A stretch of DNA of 63,346 bases, the filler included, from Reticulomyxa filosa (taxonomy: Eukaryota > Protista > Foraminifera): NCBI GenBank assembly GCA_000512085.1. It is 18 parts of 18 records of this genome, joined end to end, with 100 filler letters (N's around TTAATTAATTAA, not from the genome) between each part and the next. Parts side by side here need not be neighbours in the genome. Positions count along the whole stretch, not along the records: positions 18,886 to 25,635 come from ASPP01019119.1; 17 more parts are not named here. One strand, written 5' to 3'. Made by a program: the position numbers and the translations under genes. The notes under the pieces were generated by a model. It was not told where the DNA came from and did no database searches. It was given only the letters and a program-made list of their open reading frames with translations. This document shows positions 18,786 to 25,635 of the stretch, in pieces (within the stretch, counting starts at the first letter, position 1; each line of letters starts with the position of its first letter).

Positions 18786-19022
18786 NNNNNNNNNNNNNNN
18801 NNNNNNNNNNNNNNNNNNNNNNNNNNNNNTTAATTAATTAANNNNNNNNNNNNNNNNNNNNNNNNNNNNNNNNNNNNNNNNNNNNTGTTTATATGTATGT
18901 TATATGTATGTTCATATGTATGTTTATATTTATGTTCATATGTATGTGTTTGTACATTTATTTTCTTCTCATCTACGTAGCTTTGACATCGTGTATGTGC
19001 ATATGCATATTCCACAAAGACA

Positions 19023-20063
19023 TCAAAAAAACAAAACTTCACTGGATAGTCTTCTTTCCACTTTGTAATGTCCCTTTTTCAACTTCATAAGTTTTTGCTT
19101 GTGTTCGATCAAAGTCTCCAAGTCCTCTAGCTCGCTGTTCAGCTCTGGTTTCTGCTGTCTGCGTGGTGAGTTTCTTTTGGAGGTGGAGGAGGAAGAGGTA
19201 ATGAGTATGTGCTGCGCTTGTGGCAACGTCATGGTCGTAGTGATCCTGGGCAGAATAGTGGCCGTGGGCGTGGTTGCCTTATTCAAAGAGTGCGGGTCGC
19301 GTGTAAGTTTGGAGGAAAAGTACAACGAATTGACCGTCGTGCTTCGGACCAATGCCTTGGCATTATTGTCTTTCAAAGTGCTTTTGGCGTCACTCGACTT
19401 TTGGCGATACACGCTTTTGTCATCTTTTATTGGGTCGCATTCGTCGTCTTGTTTATCCTGATCATCGCCGGAGGATCCATAGATATCATCCAATTCTTTC
19501 GAAAATGCCCTTGTCGATACTTGTTTTTTCATTATTGTTATGTTGAAGTTGTTATATTTTGATCCATAATCATCGCCATTCGATGACACCCCCGTCTCTT
19601 TGGTATCGTCTGTCCATTCCTTCTTTTTGCCTTTCTTATACTGTTGCTGCTTTTCCACTTTCTTCACATATCTCTCACTCATTTGTTTTCCTTGCTCCTG
19701 GTCTTGGTTTGTCGCTCTTCGCTGTCCTCCCTTCGACACCAAAGTAAACGCAGACTCGTGTCCTGGCGGATAGTACCATTGACTATCCGTATCCACGCCT
19801 ACGTCCTCATCCGAATATGAGGCCGAGTATTGAGGTGTGTGCTTGCTTTGGTTTTTCAGGTGCGAACGGGGGTTTGGAGGGGGAGGCTTTGATGGCCGAT
19901 TCTTTTTTATCTTGTTTGACGAAATCTGTCTTTTTTTCGCAGGCACGTCTAGGGGGTCTGACTCCGTTGCCATCACTTCCAGTGTCTCCACTCCATTGCT
20001 TTGCGAAGCCAAGGGTTGGAGTAATTCCGAAGGATTGGAAGTTGAGGTTATCATTCGTCCCAA
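19023..20063 (-). CDS. Hypothetical low-complexity/disordered protein
   Basis: 346-codon GC-richer ORF, rich in K/S/T/D, with no recognisable domain; exon boundaries uncertain. Confidence 0.55.
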   Translation of the reverse strand: MGRMITSTSNPSELLQPLASQSNGVETLEVMATESDPLDVPAKKRQISSNKIKKNRPSKPPPPNPRSHLKNQSKHTPQYSASYSDEDVGVDTDSQWYYPPGHESAFTLVSKGGQRRATNQDQEQGKQMSERYVKKVEKQQQYKKGKKKEWTDDTKETGVSSNGDDYGSKYNNFNITIMKKQVSTRAFSKELDDIYGSSGDDQDKQDDECDPIKDDKSVYRQKSSDAKSTLKDNNAKALVRSTTVNSLYFSSKLTRDPHSLNKATTPTATILPRITTTMTLPQAQHILITSSSSTSKRNSPRRQQKPELNSELEDLETLIEHKQKLMKLKKGHYKVERRLSSEVLFF

Positions 20064-20828: not shown

Positions 20829-21792
20829 ATGCAGCAATTGTCATCAATGGAAAATACAGTGTTAGGAATATGTGCTGGTTTAGTTGAAATAGGAATGGCT
20901 CAACCGTTGTTGTACTGGAAAAACGCGGTCCAACAAAAATTGCCGTGGACAATAAATCCAAGGTATTTGTACCGTGGACTGGCAGCAAATGCAATAAATT
21001 TTAGCGTTTTATGTGGCATTCAATTTTTTGGGACAGGAGTGATCCAACAAATGATCGTAGGGAAAGATTCACTGGATCGAAGACTGACCCACACAGAGAC
21101 AATTGCAGCTTCTTTTGGAGGAGGTGTTATCTCTGGTTTTATTTGTGGTCCATTGGAACTAGTGGTTGTGCAACAACAAGTTTGTAGTATTTAAAGAAAA
21201 TGTTACGTCCAATACATCTTGATCTTTGTATCCACTGAAGGATATATGCACATGTGCGTGTTTGTGCAGAGTATAAATAAATGTGTATATGCATATATGT
21301 GTGTATATAATGCACATTTTTATTTGTTTGGAACAGCGGTTTGGTGGAACGTTGTGGCATACCCCCTATCGTCTGACCAAGAAATTTGGTTCTTTCGCTT
21401 TGTCGCGAGGTCTTGTAACTTCACTGGTTCGAGAAGGAGTTTTTACTGCAAGCTATTTGGGTGTAATGCCAGTGGTGAAGGAAAAGATACGAGCCAAAGA
21501 AGTGATATCAAATGAATATGCCATTCACTTATTCAGTGGAATGATCGCTGGTTTTCTTGGTGCCTTCACTACTCATCCTGTTGACACTGTCAAAACTTGT
21601 ATGCAAGGAGATATTGAACGTGCTCAATATACCAATATCATCAATACCTTCAAAAAAGTGTATGCACAAGGAGGAATGAAACGCCTCTACTATGGCTTTG
21701 GCTGGAGGTATTCCAGCATTTGTTTGGCTGTCACTGTTTTGGACAAGAGCAAAGAACTGTTGGCCCCATTGCTTTTCCCAAAATATTTTTAA
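20829..21792 (+). CDS. Mitochondrial carrier (SLC25) family protein; join(20829..21179,21337..21792)
   Basis: Three carrier signature variants PLLYWKNAVQ, PLELVVVQQQ and PVDTVKTCMQ, plus LYRGL and QGGMKRLYYG; GT-AG intron. Confidence 0.92.
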
Positions 21793-22275
21793 TATTGTCT
21801 TTTGATTAATCTTTAAACAAACAAAAAAAGGTACTGTTGTTGGGGTGTATTATGTAAATTATTTATTTTTGTTTTTAATTTTTTTGCATTTTCAAGTATA
21901 ATTTCGTATCTGTCTATACTAAGCCAATAATCTGCTCTAACAAATGTATCTTAATTCTTCAATTGTCTTTAGCACAATCATTATTTTAAAGAATACTCTT
22001 GATTTATTTTGCAATTGACATGAATTGTTTGTTTCGGGATTTTCTGCCATTTGATTATTTCATTTCTCTCCTTTACTTTTATTTATGAATTTACATTACG
22101 AAGTTTCACTATTCTCTAAAAGCAAAATACATCCACTTAGTTTCACGTGTTGACGTCGAAAACAGCTGCACTGAACTTTTGTTCTAAAAAGACTCGTCAG
22201 TCCCTGACAAAACTTTTAAGTTTTTTGGTTTTCAGAATTTGTCTTATTGTTCATTACCAGCTACTACTTCTTTCA

Positions 22276-24561
22276 ATGAGTCAAAAAATGCAGACGTAAG
22301 TTTATTGTCCAAATAAGTGTATTTATTCCGAAAAAAAAACTTGGTGTACTCATCAATAGACAACCCGCCCAGAACAAGGGGAAAAAAAATAAGCAAAAAA
22401 AGAAGACGGCAGAACCTGACGATACAAAAGATATATCATGGACTTTTGGTAATTTTTTTAAAAATTGACCATACATTTTTTAATGTACTGTTGCAAAAAA
22501 AAAAAAAAGATGACCTACCGGCAACGAAGACAGCAAACGATGACGGATTTGGACAACAAAAAGCAACGAAGAAAGAACCAGAAAAGGATAAAGAAAAAGA
22601 ATTGGATAGCGAAAAGGGTAAACGAAAGAGTTTGACAAATCAAGGAATTCAAGATCGCTTATGGGAAAAGGAACAATTGCAAGAAATCAATCTTCGAGTT
22701 GATAACATTTTCAATGTGTTTGGTGCTAAAATTGGAGAAAAGGGCGACAAGATGCCTGGACTTAATGAAGACGTGTTGAACGAACTCCGTGATCAGCAAA
22801 ACAAAGCGATGAAGGATTTGTCTGACAACTTCCTCAACAAGGAAGCAAAAAAAGCCAAAGAGTTGGCTGATACCAAAGCTGAAATTCGAGCCTTGCAAGA
22901 GTTTTGTAGCGACATTTTTTTTTGTTAAAAAGTCCGAATTTTATGCAACCAATCCCAAATAATAACATCAATTTCAAAGGAAATGCGAGGACCTGGGCAA
23001 AGAATTAAAGGACTTGAACTTGAAAAATGATAAGTTGAAGAAAGACAACTCAAACTTAAAAAATGAAAAGGATGATGCTATTCGTGAAAAAGACAAAGTT
23101 CTTTTGCTTTATTTTTTAAAATGTGAAATAATGTAAGTACAACGTTTATGCGTGCACACTGTAGTTGTTGAATGAAACGCAAAACGTGAAAGACTCTTTG
23201 GAAGCACAGCTGGAGGCACTTCAAAACGAAAACGAAAAACTAATAAAAATCAAAGCAAGTGCCCAGGATCCGGAAGACGAAATGCAAAAAAGATTTGCAG
23301 ATAAATTAGCGGAGGTAATTTTGATTGAGACAAACATCAAACAAACAAAAGTAAAATGTACTATTTTACAAAAACGCAGATGTTGCAAGAACGTGACGAT
23401 TATTACAACCAATTGAAAGATCAAATGGACGATGCGTTCCAAAAACAAATGAAGGAAATGCAAAAAAGCTATGATAAACAAATTGATGACTTGAAGGAAG
23501 GCGGTGAAGCTCAAAAAAAAGAATTGGGTGACTTGCAAACGGAGTTGCTAAAAGCGGCACAAGATAGAGACCAAGCAAAACGAGATTTGGATAAAGAGGT
23601 TTGTTTTTTCAACAAAATAAAACAACTGCACGTAAAACAAAAAAACGAATACATTATTGCAAAATTGGATGACAGAAATCACTTCGTGAAGCTCTCGAAA
23701 ATGAACTGAAAAAACAAAAAGACGGCGCAAAAGATGAGCTAAAACGCGTTAAAGATAAAAACGATCAAGTCCAAAAAGACTATCGACAAATGTGTGACGA
23801 CTACTTTGCTTTAGAAAAAATCAATTTAGATTTGCGAGTGGAAATTCAGGCATTGAAACAAAAATTGGATAAATTTGAGGAACAACACAAAATTGAAAGC
23901 CCACTTCGTCCAAAAAAACGTCGTCGAACGGAATCGTCTTTGATGGTTCGGTGCATTTTCATATCTTTTTTTAAAAATTATTTGTCAATACAACGAATTG
24001 TTTAAAACAAAAGGAAGCAAAGGTATTAAAATCAGTGAAAGGGCCTTTGATCGAATCTCAAAGCGTATTTCCGTTAGACTGTATTATGTGGCAGTATGAA
24101 GGTGATTGGACAGGCTTTGAATTGCAAAATCAATGGAACAAGCCCATCGTCCTCAAAGGATGGTATTTGTCTGATGTTGACCAATCATCTCGTTTGTTGC
24201 TTCCAGAAAAAAGACTAAATCCAAGTTAAATTGGTTCATTTTGTATTTCTATTTTGCTATCAATCGCATACAATTTTATTGTAATAAATGAAACATAGTG
24301 GATATCATTCGAGTTTGTTTAACTGAGAACAAAAAAGAGGCAACCGACTTGGTGTGGAAGGATTTAAAACTTAAGAAAGGGGATTATCATGAATTATGGA
24401 TTGATGATATGCTGGGCTTAAGACATAAACTTGCCTCGGTTTCTGTGCCCGCAAATACATCTGGCTTTGTTAAGTAGATAACAAAGTACTTCTTAACCAA
24501 GGTAATTGTAATGATCTGATGTGAATTGCTATAGACGGCTGATGCTTGTTTTGTCATGTAA
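22276..24561 (+). CDS. Lamin-like intermediate filament protein (~554 aa, 10 exons, LTD + CaaX)
   Basis: join(22276..22295,22360..22448,22510..22900,22980..23097,23165..23314,23380..23598,23676..23945,24014..24224,24299..24468,24535..24561) is an open frame with nine GT-AG introns of 61-79 nt. Motifs: RLWEKEQLQEINLRV (coil 1A), LDLRVEIQALKQKLDKFEE (rod end), SPLRPKKRRR (CDK site + NLS), GFELQNQWNKPIVLKGWYL (LTD) and terminal CFVM*. Confidence 0.85.
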
Positions 24562-25279
24562 AAGCAAAAGATTGAAAAAGAGGTTTTTTGGTTTTGTGAT
24601 CAAAATGGGGAACGTACGGTATTGGGGCTGATCAAAATATGTTAGTGGATTGTTTTTTTTCACAATTTTTTTTTCTTTTTTTTTTGGTGGTGTCTTTTTG
24701 TGACAATGGAAAGGGAAATTTTTGTTTGATGTTGAGAATTATAAACGTTTTTCACAAAGCGATTTTGTTCTTTAAATTTCACAAAACTCGATAAGAAGCA
24801 TGATACATATTTTTGCACCGTAAAAAGGTTTTTGATATACTACTATATTATACGAGATGAATTATACAATAACAATGTAAATTCATGTTATTGCAACCGG
24901 AATGGATTGACTAGTAAATTTAGATTTATGCTTCAAAAAATTTCGTCCTAGTTTTTAAGTTTTTTGAACGTAAAAATAATTAAAATGTACACTTGTAATA
25001 ACATTGCAGAAATGAATCATTGACAAAGTGATCGCAACGAAAAATTATATGTATGATTTATCAAAAGTTAGAAAATACTACCGGTTGGAAGAAACAGACT
25101 TGTTGCAAGTATTGCCAAATTTTTAGAGGCAAGTATAATGCATACAAAAGGTATGTTATATCAACACCAAGCTATTGGGAAATCAGAAAAACAGAAAATA
25201 TGCAATGACGAAATGAATAAAAATGTTATTTAAGATGAAGATAATGTTAAGAATATGATATTACTGTAGACGAATATTG

Positions 25280-25635
25280 ACATACAAAGGAATTCGTCCA
25301 AGTTTGTCTGTGTATAATTTATTGTACAAAATAATTATTAGACCGTCCTTGGAGTATGCATGTGCATTCTGGAATGAGCAGCAGAATCTCACAAGAAAAG
25401 AATTGAAAGGATACAAAGAATTGCAATGTGAAGTAAAGATAAGTTGGAGATGAAAGTTATCTACATTATCAAGGGCATATATTCATGAATCTGAAGTTGG
25501 AGTTCCGACGCAAAGTCTGATCAATATCCACACCAGAGTAAATTGCCAATGCAGATCGCACGATTACCACACACAACCAAGTCAAGAATTAAAATATGTT
25601 CAACAGAATCAAAGTGACAAAGATGAGCGAGTTGT
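25280..25635 (+). mobile_element. Degenerate non-LTR (LINE) retrotransposon fragment, RT C-terminal region
   Basis: LSVYNLLYKIIIRPSLEYACAFWN...HKKRIERIQRIAM matches the LINE ORF2 motif LYKxxIRPxLEY...W...LERIQR; frameshifted. Confidence 0.8.

Follow-up and report, generated by a model that had tools for sequence, protein, structure and literature searches.

A ten-exon gene of the foraminiferan Reticulomyxa filosa probably encoding a compact, divergent lamin

Lamins are established outside the animals, Rhizaria included (Kollmar 2015, PMC4448529; Koreny & Field 2016, PMC5630835), and Table S1 of the latter study reports seven lamin fragments from the foraminiferan Reticulomyxa filosa, along with lamins of Ammonia and Elphidium. 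The foraminiferal proteins listed there (ETO28743, ETO24379, ETO09514, ETO17410 and others from R. filosa, Ammonia sp. 1 and 2, and Elphidium) end in CFVM, CLMM or CLFM and feature a lamin tail domain (LTD) core of the form ...LELQN..EP..LKGFYLTN (PMC5630835). For a more distant non-animal lamin, NE81 of Dictyostelium, an experimentally shown location at the nuclear envelope is reported (PMC3258179). Non-animal lamins are sparsely sampled, and much hinges on them in the debate over what kind of nuclear lamina the last eukaryotic common ancestor had. Here we analyse a gene located at positions 22276-24561, plus strand, of a stretch of R. filosa DNA (assembly GCA_000512085.1), referred to below as the window, which is 63,346 nucleotides long and supplies all coordinates given without a contig name. 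A first-pass annotation had proposed that this gene encodes a divergent true lamin.

The locus quite probably represents an intact reticulomyxid foraminiferan gene encoding a compact, divergent lamin; lamin descent and a lamina-type function appear probable too, if held a little less firmly. On our best reading, the gene would belong to a compact, so far unlisted lamin subfamily, which stands apart from the long-tailed lamins known from foraminiferans. No accession or motif of the compact family is present in the supplement of Koreny & Field (PMC5630835), and no description of the family was found in literature searches.

Gene structure, relatives and misannotation

Spliced over its ten exons, the gene amounts to 1665 nt, corresponding to 554 codons and a stop, and phase arithmetic reveals no internal stop codon. 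All nine introns run from GT to AG, are 61-79 nt long and have a G+C content of 0.18-0.30, against 0.38 in the exons. The motifs RLWEKEQLQEINLRV, LDLRVEIQALKQKLDKFEE, SPLRPKKRRR, GFELQNQWNKPIVLKGWYL, DLVWK and the terminal TADACFVM, followed by a stop, are all found in this frame.

Searches and structure models were run on single exons of the gene or on naturally uninterrupted homologous open reading frames (ORFs). Two such homologues, P0003 (523 aa) and P0032 (560 aa, from the Logan assembly of SRR31189384), are each encoded by one uninterrupted ORF on a 1.9-kb contig with short flanks, as in an mRNA. By per-exon blastp, exons 3-10 map end to end and colinearly onto both of them, with 71-88% identity per exon to P0032, and single-residue gaps occur only at split codons. 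Similarly, when the window was compared by blastn with the cDNA-like contig L004, the matching blocks were found to adjoin in L004, and the gaps between them in the window coincide exactly with the predicted introns. Junctions 3/4 to 9/10, including the last one, which separates ...GF from TADACFVM, are confirmed, one exon at a time, by homologous ORFs that run without interruption through transcript-like contigs, while the exon 1/2 and 2/3 junctions, the start codon and the stretch upstream of it have counterparts of lower similarity in L004 and P0032. Just 5' of the start codon, the stretch CCAGCTA.TA....TTTC.AATGAGTCAAA is common to window 22258-22284 and L004 8-36, and may be part of a 5' untranslated region or an initiator element. 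The ten-exon model is almost certainly correct; the frame of 554 aa interrupted by nine GT-AG introns, and the order of domains within it, both proposed at first pass, are upheld by the phase arithmetic and by the colinearity with the homologues.

A competing donor for the last intron, at 24474, had also been proposed as a source of a non-prenylated tail and, by extension, of isoforms in the style of lamin A/C. The site is a possible GT, but its use shifts the frame into a non-conserved tail that is absent from all six distinct homologues with a complete C-terminus. The donor was rejected, and the isoforms are speculation without support.

Relatives of the gene were found by two routes. A word search with exon 3 retrieved one protein, the R. 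filosa fragment RFI_33283, 59% identical and carrying an identical RLWEKEQLQEINLRV motif, and a HMMER search of a library of 1.84 billion proteins with exon 8 alone (70 aa) retrieved seven close relatives, four from R. filosa (ETO12114, ETO36362, ETO31167 and ETO14276) and three unnamed environmental proteins; P0032 was added to the family by a follow-up search. As to their genomic origin, all the related loci that were found and fetched lie on contigs of R. filosa assembly GCA_000512085.1, in agreement with the non-metazoan, rhizarian source suggested at first pass. The paralogue contigs have the same G+C content as the window (0.34-0.35) and introns at the same protein positions. Identity to the window gene is 45-77% per exon at the protein level and about 74% at the DNA level, and none of the paralogues is identical to it.

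Public annotation of these paralogues is misleading in several respects. ETO12114 and ETO36362 are labelled "viral A-type inclusion protein" and ETO31167 "GTPase", names without domain support, and ETO14276 is hypothetical. The gene models P0002, P0007 and P0008 contain F-rich insertions where the window has introns, revealing intron read-through, and the R. filosa models of the family lose the C-terminus as well. The first-pass annotation had anticipated that a gene predictor would miss the last intron and, with it, the C-terminal CaaX motif, and this is what happened at locus L006 (ASPP01021709.1, 2015-2130), where model ETO12114 stops at ...PGFVS, leaving out the CaaX exon; 3' of this stop, 89 nt of intron (GT..AG) precede a mini-exon absent from the annotation, TPESCFVM plus stop, at 2104-2130. 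Short terminal exons of this kind make gene predictors drop the CaaX, which would bias surveys of lineages with prenylated lamins. No CaaX mini-exon was found 3' of the exon-9 equivalent in three other R. filosa paralogues, ETO31167 (L005, 5127-5700), ETO36362 (L007, 4669-4900) and ETO14276 (L008, 471-700), and the compact family may thus include CaaX-less members.

In one environmental contig, L003, the family sequence is split into two ORFs. We considered intron retention at the exon 4/5 position and dropped it, the split being due to frameshifts in A-runs. These frameshifts (L003 440-540) fall inside the exon-4 equivalent and resemble assembly or sequencing errors.

Tail domain, rod and sorting signals

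The C-terminal part of the protein is very likely a lamin tail domain with an immunoglobulin (Ig)-like fold. Besides its close relatives, exon 8 matched ten further, mostly long multi-stretch proteins, with whole-library E values of 4.5e-8 to 8.5e-4; three of the ten (P0009, P0013 and P0017) were scanned, and all three are Pfam LTD proteins (E 1e-25 to 1e-71). Matches of exon 8 to Pfam-verified LTD proteins range from 4.5e-8 to 5e-4 in whole-library E value. In a local hmmsearch, the family tail profile aligns to bacterial LTD segments across exon 8 as well as exon 9, and hhalign of the family tail against these segments returned a probability of 96.8% and an E value of 2.2e-10. Pfam LTD (PF00932) itself is matched by six of nine family members, with a best E value of 0.0017 and at best 21 bits.

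The AlphaFold model of the tail, suggested at first pass as a check, was built on P0032 with AlphaFold 2 (AF2) and is a beta-sandwich, with a predicted local distance difference test score (pLDDT) of about 90 in the core. When it was compared with the PDB by Foldseek, 16 of the 17 top matches were Ig-folds of lamins B1, B2 and A/C, the only other one being an archaeal pilin at rank 10. The lamin matches (3umn, 3jt0, 1ifr, 1ivt, 2lll and 1ufg) have E values of 4e-5 to 3e-3 and target-normalised template modelling (TM) scores mostly of 0.5-0.6. Exon 8 matches, profile alignment and structural neighbours agree on the LTD/Ig tail of the original proposal, and the refuting outcome named there, a tail lacking such a fold, did not materialise.

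The rod is about 313 aa long, of which coil 1B takes up about 113. In the full-length AF2 model of P0032, helices span residues 64-119 (confident only for about 91-119), 130-242 and 252-406, describing a tripartite rod of coils 1A, 1B and 2, with breaks at G/P-rich stretches matching linkers L1 and L12; the window exons align to the rod segments of P0032 without gaps. Heptad periodicity is marked along the rod (z 6-8). Coil 2 was further examined by a simple analysis of our own on the family profile, which is not a curated test. Its start (P0032 252-297) follows an 11/3, or hendecad, periodicity (z 8.4, with none of 2000 shuffles as high), residues 298-350 a 7/2 periodicity (z 6.0), and residues 358-405 again a 7/2 periodicity (z 6.8). 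Between the two heptad stretches, the core positions L347 and I358 of P0032 are spaced by 11 residues, and the phase jumps by 0.43 residue, where a stutter predicts 0.5 and the absence of a discontinuity 0. The succession of hendecad, heptad, stutter and heptad specific to coil 2 of intermediate filament (IF) proteins is therefore present; in human lamin A/C, the corresponding segments are residues 240-277, 278-319, 320-330 and 331-381 (PMC10183791).

Pfam Filament (PF00038) is also matched colinearly by six of nine family members, with a best E value of 0.0048, so that it ties with LTD as the most recurrent Pfam family. The matches, though below threshold, are near-global, as in P0033, where residues 73-318 align to profile positions 33-277 of 313. 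Single exons produced only coiled-coil noise against Pfam, neither Filament nor LTD, and P0003 has no Filament match. By eye, EKEQLQEIN.RV and F.LEK..LDL..EI resemble the consensus motifs of IF rod ends. The first-pass description of a rod shorter than that of animal lamins, with an altered YRKLLEGEE motif, proved accurate, the sequence found at that place being LKQKLDKFEE. The periodicity of coil 2 is real but moderate evidence that the rod is of the IF type.

The protein ends in CFVM, which is followed by the stop codon (24547-24561). Among the listed homologues, CFVM is found in five and CFLM in two; two pairs share 90% clusters, leaving six distinct proteins. The last junction of the gene is mirrored in uninterrupted ORFs, which read GF-TAESCFVM, GF-TPDSCFVM and GF-TSDTCFLM, and an additional CFVM is the one in the unannotated mini-exon of L006. 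The C-terminal CaaX first noticed in the window is accordingly conserved in the C-terminally complete homologues. CaaX motifs with Met in the last position are of the farnesyltransferase type. Between rod and tail, ESP-x-[RK] followed by KKRRR is kept in the C-terminally complete homologues, and KKRRR is present in the six homologues covering the region; this basic stretch is predicted to be a nuclear localisation signal (NLS).

Functional reading and alternative explanations

Analogy with well-studied lamins suggests how the protein might work. Its rod, about 313 aa long, would dimerise as a parallel coiled coil and assemble head to tail, and KKRRR would direct import of the protein into the nucleus. 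CFVM would be farnesylated, clipped and methylated, anchoring the protein at the inner nuclear membrane; a partner-binding surface could be offered by the Ig-type tail domain, and the S-P-x-R site beside the rod end could mediate disassembly driven by a cyclin-dependent kinase (CDK) at division. It is from this analogy that we infer a prenylated protein, located at the nuclear rim, forming filaments and regulated at mitosis.

A number of observations weigh against a lamin. The Pfam gathering scores of Filament (40 bits, against 17 at best) and LTD (34.3, against about 21) are reached neither by any single exon nor by any full-length homologue. The PDB sequences, searched with exon 8 (phmmer) and with the family and tail profiles, yielded no lamin; word searches with P0003 and with the tail region of P0032 returned family members only; and animal lamins were unreached by any sequence search, nor did an accepted lamin come up in the word searches or the library search. 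The fold evidence comes from P0032, whose identity in the two tail exons is 75-83%, and not from the joined protein of the window. Coil 1B, at about 113 aa, is short of lamin length: a typical lamin coil 1B measures 143 aa, six heptads more than that of vertebrate cytoplasmic IFs. Finally, the head of the window protein has no S/T-P-x-K/R site, the lack of an SPTR-type site having been pointed out at first pass; relatives do have S-P-x-K sites in the head, namely SPQK in P0032 (residues 59-64) and SPTK in RFI_33283 (P0001 residues 22-26). The "divergent true lamin" of the first-pass annotation thus stands less firmly than first put, on its architecture, its LTD and the IF-type periodicity of its rod; the Pfam comparison suggested there gave colinear Filament and LTD matches, all of them below the gathering scores, and provided no link to animal lamins.

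A further point of this kind is that R. filosa has canonical, long-tailed lamins, so that the compact family need not be the main component of the lamina. This also favours a different explanation, namely that the gene is a lamin-derived paralogue acting outside the lamina, in some other membrane-associated or cytoskeletal role, as did animal cytoplasmic IFs once derived from lamins. The existence of several R. filosa paralogues (P0001, P0002, P0006, P0007 and P0008), the three loci without a detected downstream CaaX mini-exon (L005, L007 and L008), and a rod having the length of the Pfam Filament profile, not that of the longer lamin rod, all fit with it. We nonetheless regard it as unlikely, since NLS, SP site and CaaX are kept together in the window copy and in six distinct homologues, and this combination is a nuclear-lamin signature, lost by the animal cytoplasmic IFs.

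Convergence is less probable still. According to this explanation, a generic coiled-coil protein would have picked up an LTD, possibly of the bacterial type, together with an NLS and a CaaX, independently and sharing no descent with IF proteins or lamins. The sequence of the rod does not significantly match IF proteins, the tail significantly matches, outside the family, only bacterial multi-LTD proteins, and LTD-like domains are widespread in bacteria (Koreny & Field 2016, PMC5630835). The scores of the bacterial proteins are high, however, partly by summation over 3-6 repeats per protein, and in structure the neighbours of the tail are lamins of eukaryotes. The rod, for its part, carries the hendecad-heptad-stutter-heptad plan, its stutter lying some 50 residues short of the rod end, a hallmark of IF proteins; Filament matches are the most recurrent and are colinear; and the LTD core, the coil 1A motif and the rod-end motif look, by eye, like those of foraminiferal lamins. 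A silent or decaying gene, belonging to a multi-copy family and lying in a repeat-rich genome, would account for our finding neither a transcript of the exact locus nor, within the length ranges searched, its protein on record, but with ten open exons, nine GT-AG introns and the conserved family residues retained down to the CaaX, this is a very remote prospect.

With a compact lamin as the preferred reading, it may be proposed, tentatively and at somewhat less than even chances, that reticulomyxids carry two lamin types of distinct structure, the long-tailed one and a compact one of about 520-560 aa, with an IF-length rod and an LTD placed directly after the NLS, the latter having expanded into CaaX-bearing and apparently CaaX-less paralogues. 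If true, the diversification of animal lamins into A- and B-type forms and cytoplasmic IFs would have an independent counterpart in Rhizaria, hidden so far by misannotation and by domain scores below threshold. What the locus offers is a clean gene model, spliced in full, of a compact lamin-like subfamily in Rhizaria that is missed by standard domain scans and mislabelled in public records. Its short rod, in which the stutter and hendecad plan is intact, is a natural variant for testing which rod features are needed in lamin assembly.

Feature map, flanking sequences and comparison with known proteins

Table 1. Window coordinates of the exons and of the predicted protein features of the compact lamin-like gene
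Feature	Position	Strand	Remarks
Exon 1	22276..22295	+	MSQKMQ + 2 nt; first ATG after an in-frame stop; ATGAGTCAAA start common to L004
Exon 2	22360..22448	+	Basic, K-rich head; 52% identity to P0032 14-38; weaker support than other exons
Exon 3	22510..22900	+	Remainder of head, coil 1A, L1, start of coil 1B; 73% identity to P0032 55-173
Exon 4	22980..23097	+	Coil 1B; 87% identity to P0032 175-213; heptad a/d signal above shuffles
Exon 5	23165..23314	+	End of coil 1B, L12, start of coil 2; 78% identity to P0032 214-263
Exon 6	23380..23598	+	Coil 2, hendecads then heptads; 71% identity to P0032 264-336
Exon 7	23676..23945	+	Coil 2 with stutter, rod end, S-P-L-R, NLS; 88% identity to P0032 337-426
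Exon 8	24014..24224	+	First half of lamin tail domain, beta core from ~24074; 83% identity to P0032
Exon 9	24299..24468	+	Second half of lamin tail domain, to ~24444; ends ...SGF; 75% identity to P0032 498-549
Exon 10	24535..24561	+	27-nt mini-exon, TADACFVM + stop; CFVM at 24547-24558
Coil 1A	22656-22721	+	RLWEKEQLQEINLRVDNIFNVF; same motif in RFI_33283
Linker L1	22722-22772	+	G/P-rich; AF2 helix break at P0032 120-129
Coil 1B end	to 23254	+	In exon 5
Linker L12	23255-23281	+	ASAQDPEDE; AF2 helix break at P0032 243-251
Coil 2 start	from 23282	+	In exon 5
Stutter	about 23706-23741	+	In exon 7; core L to L, 11 residues apart
Rod end	to 23882	+	In exon 7
S-P-L-R site	23898-23909	+	In exon 7; adjoins rod end
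NLS (predicted), KKRRR	23913-23927	+	In exon 7; between rod and tail domain

The sequences flanking the gene are of various kinds. Upstream, on the same strand, lies a gene of the mitochondrial carrier family (20829-21792), two ORF pieces of which match PF00153 (E 6e-6 and 8e-19); one intron or more evidently lies between them. Farther upstream, the opposite strand contains an open frame of 346 aa (19023-20063), rich in S, K, D and T, with no family match. Simple TG/TA-rich repeats (18886-19100 and 21220-21330) yield ORFs such as MYVHMYVYIYVH. Downstream, a short plus-strand ORF (25277-25450) containing ...RPSLEYACAFWN... resembles the C-terminal region of reverse transcriptases of retrotransposons lacking long terminal repeats, and has no supporting Pfam match.

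Among the known proteins with which the compact family may be compared, the bacterial LTD (PF00932) repeat proteins are significantly similar to its tail in sequence, sharing the pattern W.E[LI].N....P[IV].L.GW.L.D. They are, in contrast, secreted or surface multi-domain proteins, with no coiled-coil rod and neither NLS nor CaaX. Dictyostelium NE81, likened here by its described features, is a non-animal lamin with rod, CDK1 site, NLS and CaaX, but belongs to another supergroup.

The metazoan B-type lamins (human lamins B1 and B2, with the A/C Ig-folds, 3UMN, 1IFR and 2LLL) have in common with the compact family the tripartite rod and the plan of its coil 2, the S-P-x-[KR] site and basic NLS following the rod, the Ig-type LTD and a farnesylatable CaaX ending in Met. 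They differ in that identity over the tail is only 17-20%, with no significant sequence match, and in that their coil 1B counts 143 aa, against about 113; the window copy, moreover, has no CDK site in the head and carries LKQKLDKFEE in place of YRKLLEGEE.

The foraminiferal lamins are from the same lineage and feature the same order of rod, NLS, LTD and CaaX. By eye, they also resemble the compact family in the LTD core, ..ELQN..P..LKG.YL[ST][DN]..LP, and in the rod end, F..L...K..LD.EI, and the CaaX of the Ammonia sp. 1 lamin, CFVM, is identical. Their coil 1A region, ..LN.RLEM[FY]VR.Q.., is unlike that of the compact family, and the spacer between NLS and LTD, about 150-250 aa in these long-tailed lamins, is reduced to about 30 aa in the compact proteins, whose total length is only about 520-560 aa.

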